This document shows, piece after piece, positions 42,126 to 53,113 of a stretch of DNA of 64,000 nt. Position 1 is the first letter of the stretch. Each line of letters opens with the position of its first letter. Location of the stretch: positions 1,302,001-1,366,000 of the forward strand of contig MU008167.1 in NCBI GenBank assembly GCA_010909165.1, read 5' to 3'. The notes under the pieces were generated by a model. It saw only the letters and a program-made list of their open reading frames with translations. It searched no databases and was not told the DNA's origin. This stretch comes from Anthoceros angustus (lineage: Eukaryota > Plantae > Anthocerotophyta). The position numbers and the translations under genes are program-made.

Positions 42126-42177
42126 TACAATTCTAATTATTTTCTTTCCGTGCTCTATTTTATTTTTCTTTTTACCG

Positions 42178-42700
42178 TGACTCGAGGGGTCTCCCTAAGA
42201 TGGCCTATGGTAGATGGGCTCAACCCAATCTCCTTTTCTCAATAGAATTAACTATCTCCTACACAATTATCTTAATCCTTCAACTTCATCTCATTTGAAG
42301 GGTAGTCTCGCATGTTGTTCTCTCCTAACACGATAGTCAGCCATAAGTTCATTGGAATTGTATGGTTAAGCAACCCTCTTTTTATTGTGACCTGAGGCGT
42401 CTCTCTAAGATGTCCTATGGTAGATGGACTCAACCCAATCTCTCTTTTCTCAATAAGGTTATCTTCTACACAATTATCTTAATCCTTCAACTTCATCTCG
42501 TTTCAAGGGTAGTCTCGCACGTTGTTCTCCTTTGGTATGATAGTTAGCCAGGAGTTCATTGGAACTGAGTGGTTGAGCAACCCTTTTTTTAGTGTGATCC
42601 GATGGGTCTTCCTAAGATGTCATACAGTAGATGGACTCAATCCAATCTCTCTTTTCTCATCTCATCTTCAACTTCATCTCATTTCAAGGGTAGTCTCCCT
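42178..42700. repeat. ~207-bp tandem repeat (about 2.5 units)
   Basis: ctaagatg.c.tat/cagtagatgg.ctcaa.ccaatctc..cttcaacttcatctc recurs at ~42195, 42403 and 42610. Confidence 0.85.
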
Positions 42701-44153: not shown

Positions 44154-47100
44154 ATGGCGACTCCGCTGGCGCTGTCCTGTGCAACATCGACGCTGCCGTC
44201 GTCTTCTTCGTCCTCGGGACAAGGCCAAGGCCGTGGCCCCGTCTCCCCGCCTCCCTTCATCGAGCTGCTGTACTTTCACAAGGCGATCCGGGCGGAGCTG
44301 GAGCGGCTGCACCAGGATGCGCTCGCTGTGGAGGACGGGAGCGAAAGGGAGGTGCGGGCGCTCGTCGATCGATACTTCTTCCTGCTCTCCATCTACAATC
44401 ACCACAGCAGAGTGGAGGATGAGGTAGCGGATTTTTAGGTCAAGTTTGGGAAGATGGAATTTTCTTCAGTCTGGGAGGCTGAAGTGCGTGCGGGTTGCAG
44501 GTCCTGTTTCCGGCGTTGGATCTTCGTGTCAAGAACGTTGCTTCTGCGTACTCGCTCGAGCATCAGGTGGCAACAAACCTGTTTGATCAGATGTCCGCAC
44601 ATTTGACTGCGGCGTTGAAGGAGAAGGGGAATGTTTCTACTCACCTCCGACGAGACATTATCGGGTGTGCGGAAGCCATTCAGACTACTCTCAATCAGCA
44701 CTTGTCGAAGGAGGAGGAACATGTGAGTGGTTTTGGATTACCAGCTGGGAGATTGCTGGCTGGCTGAGGTGCTGATTTAGTTTATGTTTTACTTGGCAGG
44801 TGTTTCCGCTTCTTTTTCGTCATTTTAATTATGAAGAGCAGGCAGCTTTAGTGTGGCAGTTCATGTGTAGCTTTCCGGTGAACTTGATGGAGAAGTTTCT
44901 TCCATGGCTTGCATCGTCTCTGTCTGTGGAGGAGAAGAACGAGATGGTTGCCTGCCTGCAAGAGATTGTCCCGAGGGAGGAGTTACTTCAGAAGGTGTTT
45001 TCTCGTCTGCAGGTTTTGAACTTTTCGATCGTTGCTGATTAGTTTTCCTGAGCCCTGACAGCCTTGGAAATCTCTTGCATCTGTGGAAAAAGGTTGTTTC
45101 GACCTGGCTGGAGGGGGGCTCTTTGGCAGCGGAGTTGAGGGGTCCTGGAAGCATGTCCTTGTTAGCTATATGTTCTGAGTCCTTTTCGGAGCTGGTACAA
45201 GAGTCTTCCAACGGAAGGATGGAGGGCAGTCCTGCTCTCTATCTTGAGGATGATGGGTCACCAGAAATTGTGAACGATCTGAGTGAAGGAACAGAAGAGA
45301 TGGATTCAGGTGAGGATGACTGCCAGAAAGATGCCGAAAGCTTACAGGGGTGTATCAAGCTTCCTATTAATGAGCTCCTGTACTGGCATACTGCCATTCG
45401 GAAAGAGCTGCAAGAATTTGTCGACGAAGCACGCAGAATCGAATCTTCTGATTTAGTGTCCCCCACTACTTTGTCCTCGTTCATTGAACGATTGCAATTT
45501 TTGGCAGATGTCTGCATATTTCACAGGTGGGACTACCCTTTCAGCACTCTTCACCTTGTTTGAAACATAGAAGGGTGTACTCTAGTGTTGAAAAAACTCT
45601 CATTTCAGTGCTGCAGAAGATAATGTCGTCTTCCCGGCTGTTGGCCTGAAAGTGAAGCGCCCAGTGTCCTATGCGGCAAGGCATGCAGAAGAAGAACAAC
45701 AGTTTGACGATGCTCGGAAGCTGCTTGTGGATTTTCAGATTGCTGGACTTGGCAGTCCTAGAGCATGTGCCATCCACAAAGAGCTATGTGCTCAGGCAGA
45801 GCACATAGTGGAGACAGTCCAACAGCATTTGCTGGATGAAGAAGTTGAGGTGCAGATTCAGTTTTCTGTGTTGATCTATGTGCATGCAAGAGGACCCATT
45901 GCTGGCCCTATAGGTTCAGCATTCTCTCGAATCTCCTCACTCAACATCTCATTTTTCAGATTCTACCACTTGCTCGGAAGCACTGCAGTGTGGAGGAGCA
46001 GCGGCTACTGCTTTATGAAAGCCTTCGTGTAATGCCACTCAAGTTTTTGGAGAGAGCGCTGCCTTGGCTTGTTGCAGTACTGACTGAAGATGAGGCCAAG
46101 GATATGCTCTGCAACATGCATTTAGCTGGTTCATCTCCTTCCTTCTCTTACACTTCCTCCATTTCCTGCTGCTCTGCTCCCCCTATTTCCTCCTTCCTTT
46201 GTACAATCTTCCTCGTCCCTTCTTCCTTGTAGTTGCCTTCTTGCTGGTTTTGTTCTTCGTGCATGCCTTTTCTCTTTTTCCTCGCTCCTCTGTCCGCTGT
46301 TTTGCTCAGGTGCTTTCTTGTTACGGCCATGCATTTCTTGGAGTTTATGCTTGTATTTGTTGTGTGTGTATGCAGCTCCTGACACAGACAAGGCCTTAGT
46401 CACCTTATTCTCTGGTTGGGCTTGCAAAGGACAACTAAGCAGTTGTATCAAGGCACGTCCATTCAGGTGTTTGTCAACCTGTTCTGCACATCCTTGCTCT
46501 GTAATGAAAGTGCTCGATCCAAGCAATGCAGAGCTGGAGAACCCAGAGGATAGGCTGGGTAGTCTATCATTTGTGGATGAAGTTCAAACTCTTGGAGAAA
46601 CATTTGAGAGGCCTGTGAAACGTGCGCGAAATGAAACGAATGAAGGAAGAGAAGACCCAATCTTCAGCTGTGGGAAGGCTGCACAGCAAGAAGGAGCAGG
46701 CAAGCCGATTGTCAAACACTTGTGCTGTGCTCCTGAATTAGGCATGAGTCCCATCCTTGGAACTGGGGCTGCAAGGTCAATTGGAAGTGCATGCCGCTCT
46801 GTCTTGCATGATGGGCTGCAGGGAAAAGGTTCAGGTTCTCTGGGTTCCAGTCTATTTGGCTGGGGTAGCACCAGGGGCACTTTCTCAAATGGCCCTCGTC
46901 CGAAGCCGATTGACCACATCTTTCAGTTTCACAAAGCCATTAGAAAGGACTTAGAATATCTTGATATCGAGTCTGCCAAGCTCTCTGACTGTGATGATGA
47001 ATTCCTGAGGCAGTTTAGTGGGAGGTTCACGTTCTTACAGGGTCTTTATCGGGCCCACAGCAATGCTGAAGACGATATTGTATTTCCAGCATTGGAAGTG

Positions 47101-49764
47101 CATGCCGCTCTGTCTTGCATGATGGGCTGCAGGAAAAGGTTCAGGTTCTCTGGGTTCCAGTCTATTTGGCTGGGGTAGCACCAGGGGCACTTTCTCAAAT
47201 GGCCCTCGTCCGAAGCCGATTGACCACATCTTTCAGTTTCACAAAGCCATTAGAAAGGACTTAGAATATCTTGATATCGAGTCTGCCAAGCTCTCTGACT
47301 GTGATGATGAATTCCTGAGGCAGTTTAGTGGGAGGTTCACGTTCTTACAGGGTCTTTATCGGGCCCACAGCAATGCTGAAGACGATATTGTATTTCCAGC
47401 ATTGGAAGCGAAGGAGGCTCTCCATAATATCAGCCATTCATACACTATTGATCACAAACAGGAAGAACAGCTTTTCGCAGACATTTCTCAGGTGTTTTCT
47501 GAGCTTCTCGCTCTCCATAGTAAAACCAAAATGGAGTTGGGAGTAGAGAGGGATTGGTCTAGAGAGGTTGACATTGGGAGTGATGTGGGTAAACGGCGGG
47601 AGGTTGCTTCTAAACTGCAGCGAATGTGCAAATCTGTCCGGGTTAGCCTGGACCAACATGTGTCTAGAGAAGAAGTCGAGTTGTGGCCTTTGTTTGATGT
47701 ACATTTTACAATAGAAGAGCAGGATAACATTATCGGTCGAATCATTGGGACAACAGGAGCTGAAGTTTTACAGGCAATGATTCCTTGGGTTACCACAGCT
47801 CTCACAGAAGAGGAGCAAACCACCATGCTGAGTACATGGAGGCAAGCTACTCGGAATACTATGTTTGATAAGTGGCTAAGTGCTTGGTGGAAGGAGTCAC
47901 CAGACTCTGTCCCTGAATCTATGTGTTCGCCATCAGATAAAGATGCTTTCCCACCCTCAGGGACCAGTGAATCCCTTCAGATGGTGGCAGATTATCTGGA
48001 ACTGACAAACCAGGAAAATAAGGGGTCGTCAGAGCCTCCCCCCGAAGAGGCGAGTACTGAGCTTAAATGTTCTGAAATGCCAGAGAGTATCGGTGCCAGG
48101 CCTGAACATGCTAGTGATGGTGCCAGGCCTGAACATGGTAGTGATGGTTGGCGTTCAGTGTCATCATTCGACAATAAGGAAACCGACAGTGAAAAGTTCA
48201 GGCCAGGGTGGCAAAGTATCTTTCGCATGAATCAGAAAGAAGTGGAGGCTGCCATAAGAAAAGTCTCCAGTGACAGCTCCCTCGACCCTCGTCAAAAATC
48301 TTATCTCATTCAGAACCTTATGACCAGGTGGGATAACAAGCCTTGCTCTGTCTGTTTTATGGACAGTTGACTTTGCAGACACACTAGCATTTGAATATAT
48401 TTCCCACGAGTGTATAATTGCTTTGAATATGCCTGGAGATATTCTTATCGGTGGATCTTTTCTGGGTCAGCCGTTGGATTGTGGCTCAGCAGAAGTTGAC
48501 ACAATCAGAGGCAGATAAGGGGTTGGATTCGGTGGGAGATGTACCTGGGCGGGTGAGGTCGTTTCATAATGAGGATACCGGAGTATATGGCTGTGAGCAT
48601 TACAAGAGGAACTGCAAACTTCGTGCTGCTTGCTGTGGTTCTCTCTTCACGTGTCGATTTTGCCATGACAAAGTCAGTGACCACAGTATGGACAGGTAGT
48701 GGCTGATGTAAAGCTGGCATAAGGAATGTTGAAGGCAACAAACATGATGTTGGCCTTATCTGACAAAGGCTTTCTCTTTCAGGCATGCTACTGTGGAGGT
48801 GATGTGCATGAAGTGTTTGGAGGTCCAGCCTGTGTCTCAATATTGTATCACTCCCTCATGTGATGGATACCGTATGGCACGCTACTTCTGTAGCATCTGC
48901 AAATTTTTTGATGATGATGGCAGGTGCTGTGTTCTGCACTAACTTACCCTCTTGTTCCTCATGGTGGTGGTTGGCTTATGGAATGGGTTGCTCTAAACTG
49001 TGCTTCATTTTGTGTGCAGGGACATATACCACTGTCCATCTTGCAACCTTTGCAGAGTGGGGAAGGGACTTGGTATAGACTTCTTCCACTGCATGACTTG
49101 CAATTCCTGTATGTCTAAAAGCCTCACTAGTCACAAGTGTCGGGAGAAAGGACTTGAGTCCAATTGTCCCATTTGTCATGATTTTCTGTTTACTTCAAAC
49201 ACTCCAGTGAAGGCTCTTCGTTGCAACCATTTCATGCACTCAGCTTGCTTTCAGGTGAAGGTTTTATCTACTGGCCAGCCTATGGCTTGTCTTCAGTGTT
49301 TCTTGCATGGCAGCTTTGGAAAACTCAGTTGTCATGATTGGCATGGTGCAGGCATACACTTGCAGCAACTACACCTGTCCAGTGTGTAGCAAGTCGCTTG
49401 GAGATATGTCGGTATGTCTCTTCAGCTTAGGTGCCCTGGTCTATGTGGCACAATTGGTTGCAAAGCTGCCTTTCTTACTAAACAGTGTGTGTGGTAGGTA
49501 TACTTCGGGATGCTTGATGCCTTATTGGCTGCAGAACGGCTTCCAGATGAGTATCGCAGTCGTCGGCAGGTGTGTGGGTGGTTGCAGTCTAGTCAATTGT
49601 TTGAATCATGACACTCACGTGGAGAACCTGTCAAACAAGTCTAATTTTATGTTCTTGAACAGGAAATCCTTTGCAATGACTGTGAACAGAAAGGGACGGC
49701 AAGGTTTCACTGGTTGTACCATAAATGTGGCACTTGTGGATCTTACAACACTCGAGCAATCTGA
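44154..49764 (+). CDS. BTS: BRUTUS/HRZ-type hemerythrin-CHY-RING E3 ubiquitin ligase (iron sensor); carries an intra-exonic 311-bp duplication
   Basis: MATPL start, three HHE regions (FHKAIRAEL, WHTAIRKEL, FHKAIRKDL), GCEHYKRNCKL, CPICHDFLF and the end GSYNTRAI*. Short GT-AG introns. Confidence 0.95.
46780..47408 (+). repeat. 311/310-bp tandem duplication inside the large BTS exon
   Basis: 46780-47090 and 47091-47400 are identical except for one missing G (gcagggaaaa vs gcaggaaaa). ATTGGAAG microhomology lies at 46780, 47091 and 47401. Confidence 0.97.
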
Positions 49765-50501: not shown

Positions 50502-52123
50502 TCACGGCAGAGGCTCCTGGACATTGCCCAGTCGGTTCAGATGTAGGTACGCATCAGTTCCTGCACATCGATCAGACAAGAAACCGTGAAATTTTAGATG
50601 CTGGATGTATCATTTAAGGCAAAGCAATCGATGCTTAATAGGCCAGGGAAGAACGTACCGTAGCCCTCCATGGAAATGACCTGCAAATCCCCGCCAAAAT
50701 ATCTTGCATAAAGTCTACTAATTGGCAACCCATAGCCATATCCAGCCATAACCTGTGGCATCTCTTGTAACTGGCTCACTGATGTTTTGGCTGTGCTGTA
50801 TAAGTAAGTCCAAATCTTGGGTAAGCCACTTCGCGGAATGCCACCCCCCTCATCAGATATCTATAGTGAAGATGTCAAAAGAACAAATCAATACAAAATA
50901 ATGGCCCAGCTTAAACGAAACTCCGTCTCTTTCAAAATTCGGACCAGACCACCTGACCTTAATTGTTACATCTTCCAGACCATCAGCAACAACCACCCTG
51001 ATGGGTGGGTAGTCACGATCGTCATCCTGAAACCTCTCTTGAACAGCTCGCAGAGAGTTCTTGACGAGTTCGAAAAGCATCTGATGTAAATGTGTTGGTA
51101 CATACCTGCAAGCATGGAAGACACGGCGCAAAAAGGCATACAGACATTAGTTGGTAACAGAGATGAGATGAGATGAGAACGATTACTGCCAATCTGAGAT
51201 ATGGCATGAGATATAAGAGACATGGATCTACTTACGCAAATGTGAAATGTGGGTCACCAAAGACGTGAACCTCTGGAGCACTGCCATAAGTCCGCATACA
51301 CGCTGATCGAGCATCATCGATCGCATTCTTGGCAATCTCCACTGGTGAAACGTTTGTACATATCAGGCCAATATAACCAGGAGGCGGATGTTGGTGGTGC
51401 AGAGCAACGTGCTGTCCTGTCAATTCACATAGAGAGACTTTAAGTTTAGTACAAGCAACTAAGCCTAGAAAACGTGGAAAGGATAGAACGATGTGGAAGT
51501 GCAGAGCTGCTACTGACCTATCAGCATTCGAATCCCAATTCGGCTCATGTAGAATCGATCCAGAAACTGATGGATTTCCGGAAGCTCGTTCAGGCCCACC
51601 TTGCGGCCCAGATCTTCCTTCAACTCCTGGATTCCCATGGCCATCGTTGGCACCACATTATTGTGCCGAATTTTGATCTGGTGTATCAACTCCGTGAACT
51701 TCTGCTCATCCGCAGCATCCTGGATCTCTGGGAAGATTCTCAAGTCCTTGAACGAGTCCACATACCAGTCCCTGACCTTCAGCCAAACCCACAAACATGT
51801 CAAAACACGTCCAAACACTCCAGTCAGCTCCCATCACCTCATCAGGTCTAACCCAACGACAAGGGCAGCAGTACCTTGAGAACAGGGCTCTTTAGAGACA
51901 GCCCCTGAGGTAGATTATCAAGCTCCGCCACGCGGTGAGCCAGCCGAACCGGCAGCTCCTTGTGCAGAAACTGGGCAGACACCAGGAGATTCCTCTCGGT
52001 AGGATAAGACCCGAAATCCATCATGTACTTCAGGCTAACTCCTGTCTGCTTCTTCAGACTGCACTTATAGATGTCGTCCAGGACACTTCTAGCCACCGAT
52101 TCCGCCAATCTCTTGGCTGCCAT
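50502..52123 (-). CDS. PDK: Mitochondrial pyruvate dehydrogenase kinase
   Basis: [71 protein letters not shown] and the end [19 protein letters not shown]. Multi-exon. Confidence 0.96.
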
Positions 52124-53113
52124 AGCTCCCTCTTGCAATCCCTTTGCACTAAGCCCACCCTACAGAACCCAAAACCGCACAACCCCGGCCAGATCCCTCC
52201 CCAGCTCAGCCCACATCCTCCAATCACCTCCTCAGCTTCTGATCCCAGCGCCGGAGCTCATCTCCCACCACAGCCCTAAGCGCCCATGCTGCCATCTCCG
52301 ATCCACACAAGCCTGATTCACCCAATTCCACCTACAACACACTGAGCCCCTCACACACGTTTCGAACCAGGTGAGAGACAGCATATGGAATTCCAGGAGT
52401 CCCGGTTTCGCACGCCCTGGATACGAAACGATTGTGGGCAGGACAGGCTCTTCCGCGGAAGAAAGTACGAGAAGCGCCAGGACTTTGGTGAGCCTGTCCC
52501 CTCCGACTTCGGCAACGGCCGCATTACAGTATTCACATTCCAGCGGTGCCTCTGCCCGAGGACTGTGAGCCACTTCTACAGAATCGCGCTTCTTTGGTCG
52601 GGTGGAAAGAATATGCACCCGGGGCAAACGTGGTCCACCACAGCTGCCTTACAGTTGGCGGATCAGTGTCTGCCTGCCAGTACAGGATTCGTTGCAGGGT
52701 CCATCATCTGTTCATCGGTTTCACAGCGACCCACCTCGTATCATCTCTATGAAGGCTACTGCAACAGTATGTGACTCGATAAGTTATCCGTCCTTCTCGT
52801 CATCCGTAGCGGCCTGGTTCTATCCGACACTGCGGATTCAGCCTCAAGACATCATGTCTGCTTGCTTGCAACCCACGCTGCTGACGTCTGCTCCTTGCCG
52901 TGAGTGAGACTCTACCAAATGACATCACATGGCATGCTTTTGTTGCGTACACCGAGGGTGACGACACCATCACCACACTTACGTATATATGCCATCGGCA
53001 GGAAGGCTGCAGTAAAATGTATGGCTCAATAGTTGTGCTCTTGATCAACACCTGTGGATGCTAAGGCTATTTAGTGTTGAGCAGAAATCGAGAAGCTGGG
53101 GTGGAGACATTGA

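Follow-up and report, generated by a model that had tools for sequence, protein, structure and literature searches.

A head-to-tail duplication with an 8-nt microhomology interrupts a BRUTUS-type gene in the genome assembly of Anthoceros angustus

The stretch of DNA analysed here (64 kb of contig MU008167.1 of Anthoceros angustus; referred to below as the window, with position 1 as its first letter) carries a gene for a BRUTUS-type hemerythrin/CHY/RING E3 ligase on its plus strand (44154-49764). As assembled, exon 7 of this gene contains a 311-nt segment twice, head to tail, and the additional copy breaks the reading frame. We give an even chance to the view that this is a microhomology-mediated tandem duplication (MTD) that arose very recently within exon 7 of a seedless land plant's BRUTUS orthologue, and that it has produced a null or strongly reduced allele. 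When all readings are taken together, it is rather probable that the duplication event itself is real. What is seen at this locus is most likely a known class of mutation in a new place. The initial annotation had offered two alternatives, a truncating allele or an intron being born. The truncation is borne out by a frameshift and a stop codon, whereas the birth of an intron, although possible, receives no support from the composition of the duplicated segment or from its acceptor site.

The repeated region forms a single array at 46780-47408, to which Tandem Repeats Finder assigns a period of 310, 2.0 copies, 99% matches and a score of 1251. Copy 1 spans 46780-47090 (311 nt) and copy 2 spans 47091-47400 (310 nt), and Tandem Repeats Finder, the repeat search and the MAFFT alignment all place the copies head to tail with a spacer of zero. 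No substitution separates the two copies over 310 nt in the pairwise alignment. Their sole difference is the length of a G run directly 3' of CTGCAG, which reads GGG at 46821-46823 in copy 1 and GG at 47132-47133 in copy 2. The 8-mer ATTGGAAG opens both copies (46780-46787 and 47091-47098) and recurs straight after copy 2, at 47401-47408; in the alignment, the bases neighbouring these occurrences are unrelated. The junction between the copies is CCAGCATTGGAAGTGCATG. We estimate that a boundary match of 8 nt or longer would arise by chance with a frequency of about 1e-4. Within the window there is no other long exact tandem duplicate; no N letters were found in the 64 kb, and there is no gap near the duplication. 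Tandem Repeats Finder and MAFFT thus confirm the 311-bp tandem duplication with 8-bp microhomology that had been described from inspection of the letters.

The two copies are read in different frames. Copy 1 shares its frame with the upstream part of the exon, and copy 2, from the G run on, shares its frame with the downstream part (...FPALEAKEALHNISHSY) and the remainder of the gene. Since the length of the added unit cannot be divided by three, the frame shifts: the upstream frame runs through ...DDIVFPALE, continues for 26 shifted residues (VHAALSCMMGCRKRFRFSGFQSIWLG) and ends at a premature TAG at 47176-47178, where the initial annotation had also placed the stop. The predicted product has 777 residues, 751 native and 26 shifted, and it is without the second half of the third hemerythrin region and the entire CHY, RING and zinc-ribbon ligase end, so that the claimed loss of these domains holds as well. 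An uninterrupted full-length BRUTUS/HRZ frame is absent from the gene as assembled and is regained only when one 310-nt unit is removed. A stop codon that lies far upstream of exon junctions usually marks an mRNA for nonsense-mediated decay (NMD). The premature TAG is 1149 nt before the end of exon 7, with six further introns downstream, and the transcript should therefore be an NMD target. Reinitiation at an internal AUG, which would yield a C-terminal CHY/RING fragment, was considered and is unlikely after about 780 codons.

The gene model was obtained by tblastn with a full-length homologue (P0121) and by hand placement of GT-AG introns. Searches were run exon by exon, and joins were made only within exon 7, for stop-codon checks. 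The model has 13 exons and about 1335 codons when one repeat unit is discounted, with the start codon at 44154 and the stop codon at 49762-49764. The 12 inferred introns, all on the plus strand, lie at 44424-44500, 44723-44799, 44995-45092 (intron 3, with boundaries that lack transcript confirmation), 45527-45608, 45850-45959, 46129-46375, 48328-48470, 48696-48782, 48924-49019, 49255-49351, 49412-49497 and 49570-49662. Exon 7 (46376-48327), which holds the duplication, encodes the third hemerythrin region and a linker, and its assembled length of 1952 nt falls to 1642 nt when one unit is subtracted. The last six exon joins match P0266, a protein derived from the spliced transcript of the closest relative. 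The Pfam Hemerythrin family is matched by the two halves of exon 7 (E 4e-6 and 2e-10) and, below the cut-off, by exon 2 (E 9.5e-4), and P0121 aligns across all three hemerythrin regions. Single exons match zf-CHY (E 6e-11) and zinc_ribbon_6 (E 3e-16). The matches to RING families (E 1e-4 to 1e-3 on single exons) are below the cut-off because the domain is split across exons; the CHY/RING/zinc ribbon region as a whole is colinear with P0266. Judged by these Pfam domains and the homologue alignment, the gene is, as had been proposed, of the BRUTUS type; it has three hemerythrin regions, CHY, RING and zinc ribbon. In an exon-by-exon walk every exon is open, and one 310-nt unit of exon 7 has to be discounted for the phases to close at the stop codon. 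Because all the other exons are open and in phase, the duplication is the sole lesion of the gene, and because they are intact and phase-consistent, the lesion is young.

The ancestral state is a single copy. Among 5.8 billion proteins, the nearest match to the 415-aa piece encoded downstream of the lesion has 72% identity. This relative is represented by a genomic open reading frame (ORF), P0001, and by P0266, which fall into one cluster. Both carry the segment once (...LHDGLQCKTSGSVGSSLFGWG...FPALEAKEAL...) and are colinear over the whole of exon 7, so that both the duplication and an intron are missing from the relative at this position. When P0266 (759 aa) was used as the query, which reaches full-length models, the best matches outside its own cluster were 62-66% identical; the library of representatives contained only distant kin. 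Moss-like metagenome contigs also have a single copy, as do all the other homologues examined. No protein or contig of the same species was found in the protein collections or in the metagenome scan (48 loci, mostly moss-like). The duplication thus shows adjacent copies without a spacer, microhomology arms with unrelated flanks and a single-copy ancestor, which are the hallmarks of an MTD.

An MTD of this kind would have arisen during replication or repair, when a nascent strand ending in ATTGGAAG (now 47401-47408) re-annealed to the same 8-mer 311 nt upstream and the stretch was then copied a second time. Unless splicing rescues some small part of the transcripts, the resulting allele would be null or strongly reduced. 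The duplication could collapse back to a single copy, as other MTDs do. The closest known counterparts are the MTD alleles of ssp1 in fission yeast (PMC8639346, PMC13167724). In them, too, a short coding segment that was single-copy is duplicated head to tail, and they share with the present case a microhomology of 5-8 nt, a frameshift, inactivation of the gene, perfect copies and expected reversibility. However, the unit is 311 nt long here and 55-92 nt in ssp1, and the host here is a plant nuclear gene, known from its sequence. In fission yeast, MTDs revert at about 1e-4 and are often subclonal in clonal cultures (Dan et al. 2021, PMC8639346). The class is reported to be conserved across life and to be depleted from coding regions (Zhang et al. 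2026, PMC13167724). The consequence for the protein has counterparts among the BRUTUS/HRZ loss-of-function alleles (PMC6381054) and pea dgl (PMC10952674), which likewise affect the hemerythrin E3 ligase that keeps iron uptake in check. BRUTUS/HRZ activity is abolished when the C-terminal RING region is lost (PMC6381054; PMC10952674). Unlike the duplication described here, the known alleles are T-DNA insertions, missense changes and in-frame deletions, all of them in seed plants.

Several points weigh against a young null allele created in this manner. The duplication rests on one assembly, and repeat copies in that assembly show many 1-nt indels. In addition, knockouts of BTS are embryo-lethal in Arabidopsis, where weaker alleles over-accumulate iron (PMC6381054), so that a null allele would come as a surprise in a plant that is presumably haploid. 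Such an allele would need a paralogue, culture conditions that tolerate it, splicing that rescues it at a low level, or a subclonal state.

It is somewhat unlikely, but deserves the first place among the alternatives, that the genome is single-copy at this site and that the second copy is an artefact of layout, stitching or polishing or comes from a chimeric molecule. The gene would then be intact, in keeping with its perfect state outside the duplication and with the lethality of BTS nulls in Arabidopsis. The character of the single difference between the copies also fits an artefact, since the length of a G run is the commonest type of indel between repeat copies in the window. Elsewhere in these 64 kb, near-identical copies of repeats differ by 40 gap events versus 42 mismatches in 6.5 kb, and 31 of the 40 gaps are of 1 nt, mostly in G or C runs. 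This ratio of gaps to mismatches is typical of long-read consensus error and not of mutation. Because the GGG/GG difference belongs to the same class, it is probably a long-read consensus error as well. On the other hand, a mis-join made in layout or gap closing has no reason to hit an 8-nt microhomology, given the chance estimate above; Ns and gaps are missing from the vicinity, no second duplicate of this kind occurs in the 64 kb, and a chimeric read should lose the vote at normal coverage. The warning attached to the initial annotation, that near-identity also fits an assembly error, therefore stands, with the qualification that the microhomology speaks against a simple mis-join. If the second copy is an artefact, gene annotation in this assembly calls for caution, since an intact and important gene would be listed as a pseudogene or as two pieces.

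We consider it quite unlikely that the extra copy is a newborn intron. According to this explanation, which follows the model of Rogers (1989), a real duplication is spliced at its duplicated AGGT sites, and removal of the 310 nt between them is frequent enough for BRUTUS to work. The arithmetic is favourable. A GT at 46835 and an AG at 47143-47144 are present, and cutting out the 310 nt between them (46835-47144, CAG/GTTCTC...GGTTCAG/GT, the slash marking the splice site) returns the single-copy reading. The claim that this splice restores the frame is correct. The accompanying description of one AGGT site is not, since the unit contains three, at 46827-46830, 46833-46836 and 47023-47026. Each of them pairs with its counterpart one unit away, and all three pairs restore the single-copy mRNA exactly. 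The other two excisions, also of 310 nt, are 46829-47138 (AAG/GTTCAG...GGAAAAG/GT) and 47025-47334 (GAG/GTTCAC...GTGGGAG/GT). A near-exact pair, 46829-47132 (304 nt), scores better than the exact pairs and adds two residues, GK. The missing G of copy 2 does lie inside the would-be intron, as had been pointed out. This probably has little significance, as the difference looks like a consensus error of the commonest indel class. Deletion of this G would bring the 46829-47132 pair into frame, and it is an indel of the class of error that is common in the window. The idea that the deletion is a compensatory change was rejected, because units of 311 nt and 310 nt are both frame-breaking.

The splice signals give this explanation little help. 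Candidate sites were ranked with a crude position weight matrix (PWM) built from the 12 introns of the gene, a small sample that makes it a ranking aid only, and the real sites were scored leave-one-out. With this matrix the would-be donor at 46835 scores 4.06, and the real donors range from -0.6 to 9.3. The would-be acceptor at 47144 scores -1.82. None of the 12 real acceptors is that low (-1.24 to 10.8), and with rank 75-84 of the 166 AGs in exon 7, an average exonic AG does at least as well. Among the 975 GT...AG excisions that give an open frame, the exact pairs rank only 181 (46835-47144), 35 (46829-47138) and 80 (47025-47334). The real introns are 77-247 nt long with 37% T (range 28.7-46%), and the exons have 26% T; the would-be intron is exon-like, with 28.7% T, the lowest value among the real introns, and 23% A. 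The region of the would-be acceptor is without a pyrimidine tract, having 33% pyrimidines, as many as the weakest real intron, and it has a possible UGAU 22 nt upstream. Furthermore, the duplication brings no splice signal that was absent from the single-copy exon, in which the same GT and AG already had possible partners, and the equivalent stretch is unspliced in the transcript of the relative (P0266). In favour of splicing, 310 nt is a workable intron length, the real acceptors of introns 1, 3 and 11 are likewise without a pyrimidine tract, and the rescued mRNA would gain in proportion if the unspliced form were degraded.

Comparison with proposed intron gains leads in both directions. An engineered exon duplication has been spliced in human cells (PMC3265369). 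However, this sole experimental test gave 5.9-15.9% spliced mRNA, with a construct that had a pyrimidine tract and a branch point. The ATP2A1 and ATP2A2 case studied there (Hellsten et al. 2011) resembles the present one in that AGGT lies within an exonic tandem duplicate, the GT...AG pairs are spaced by one unit, and excision between them gives back the exact ancestral mRNA. In ATP2A a pyrimidine tract (7/8) and a consensus branch point were available, as opposed to the 33% pyrimidines of the acceptor region here. For the potato RdRp intron (Ma, Lan and Niu 2016, PMC4974935), the proposed source is likewise a tandem duplication in a plant gene that is recent and confined to the species level. 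That duplicate spanned an intron-exon boundary and so inherited a branch site, a pyrimidine tract and an acceptor, whereas the duplicate in exon 7 is purely exonic. Plant exitrons (Marquez et al. 2015, PMC4484396) demonstrate that splicing can act on exon-like sequence. Like the would-be intron, they are excised from within a long coding exon, have weak splice sites and are exon-like in composition. Exitrons are, however, stop-free when retained and mostly multiples of three, while here it is retention that breaks the frame.

On this evidence, efficient splicing of the extra copy is improbable, and some detectable splicing is perhaps twice as likely. There is, similarly, only a slight chance that a haploid plant carries the duplication as a real and fixed change and survives by means of one spliced AGGT pair. 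If this were true, it would be a spliceosomal intron made wholly of coding sequence and caught right after its birth, with zero substitutions between the copies. BRUTUS function would hang on removal of the intron, and NMD would clear the unspliced form.

The least probable of the explanations is that the duplication is real but subclonal or reversible, being present in part of the cultured cells and picked by the assembler. MTDs have high rates of formation and reversion, and in clonal cultures they remain subclonal (PMC8639346); the lack of any substitution between the copies is consistent with such a state. However, a minority variant seldom becomes the consensus.

A recent MTD remains the reading that we favour, and its meaning depends on the reality of the duplication. 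If real, this is a clean plant MTD that knocks out a conserved regulator of iron homeostasis, and the strain is a natural BRUTUS mutant of an early-diverging land plant, in which iron may build up to excess. If splicing also removes the extra copy, it is one of very few intron births seen as they happen, and it offers a direct test of the Rogers model in a plant.

Exon 7 contains a second tandem duplicate at 48092-48148, in which 27 nt occur twice in frame at 48092-48145 (GARPEHASD/GARPEHGSD). Its arm is 3 nt long (GGT), and a single C/G substitution separates the units. This duplicate is older, lies in the disordered linker and is not found in the 72% relative. It suggests that duplication at microhomologies acts naturally on this BRUTUS-type gene. 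The same exon has the motif CAG/GTGTTT at 47489-47497, which scores equal to the best real donors of the gene. Its position is that of an intron after ...DISQV in moss-like homologues (loci L011, L013 and L022; ORFs P0169/P0170), and mosses have another intron after ...GAEVLQ. Both here and in the relative, exon 7 looks as if three or more ancestral exons had been fused by intron loss, with an old splice-site motif kept. Elsewhere in the gene, the acceptors of the introns at 44995-45092, 49412-49497 and 44424-44500 are almost without a pyrimidine tract (...GTGGAAAAAG/, ...GTGTGTGGTAG/ and ...GCGGGTTGCAG/, respectively), and splicing in this plant seems to tolerate tract-poor acceptors.

Positions 1-34000 of the window are occupied by large direct repeats that are 98-100% identical, are spaced about 9.2-10.8 kb apart and have internal tandem arrays of 29-35 nt and 70-74 nt. 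In these repeats, 1-nt indels in G or C runs are about as many as substitutions, which suggests an unpolished long-read consensus. A 207-nt tandem repeat (2.4 copies, 84% identity) lies in AT-rich DNA at 42167-42659, about 1.5 kb upstream of the BRUTUS start. The neighbour on the other side, at 50594-52140 on the minus strand, is convergent with BRUTUS and encodes a mitochondrial kinase of the PDK/BCKDK type (BCDHK_Adom3 E 5e-30, HATPase_c), and its exons look open.

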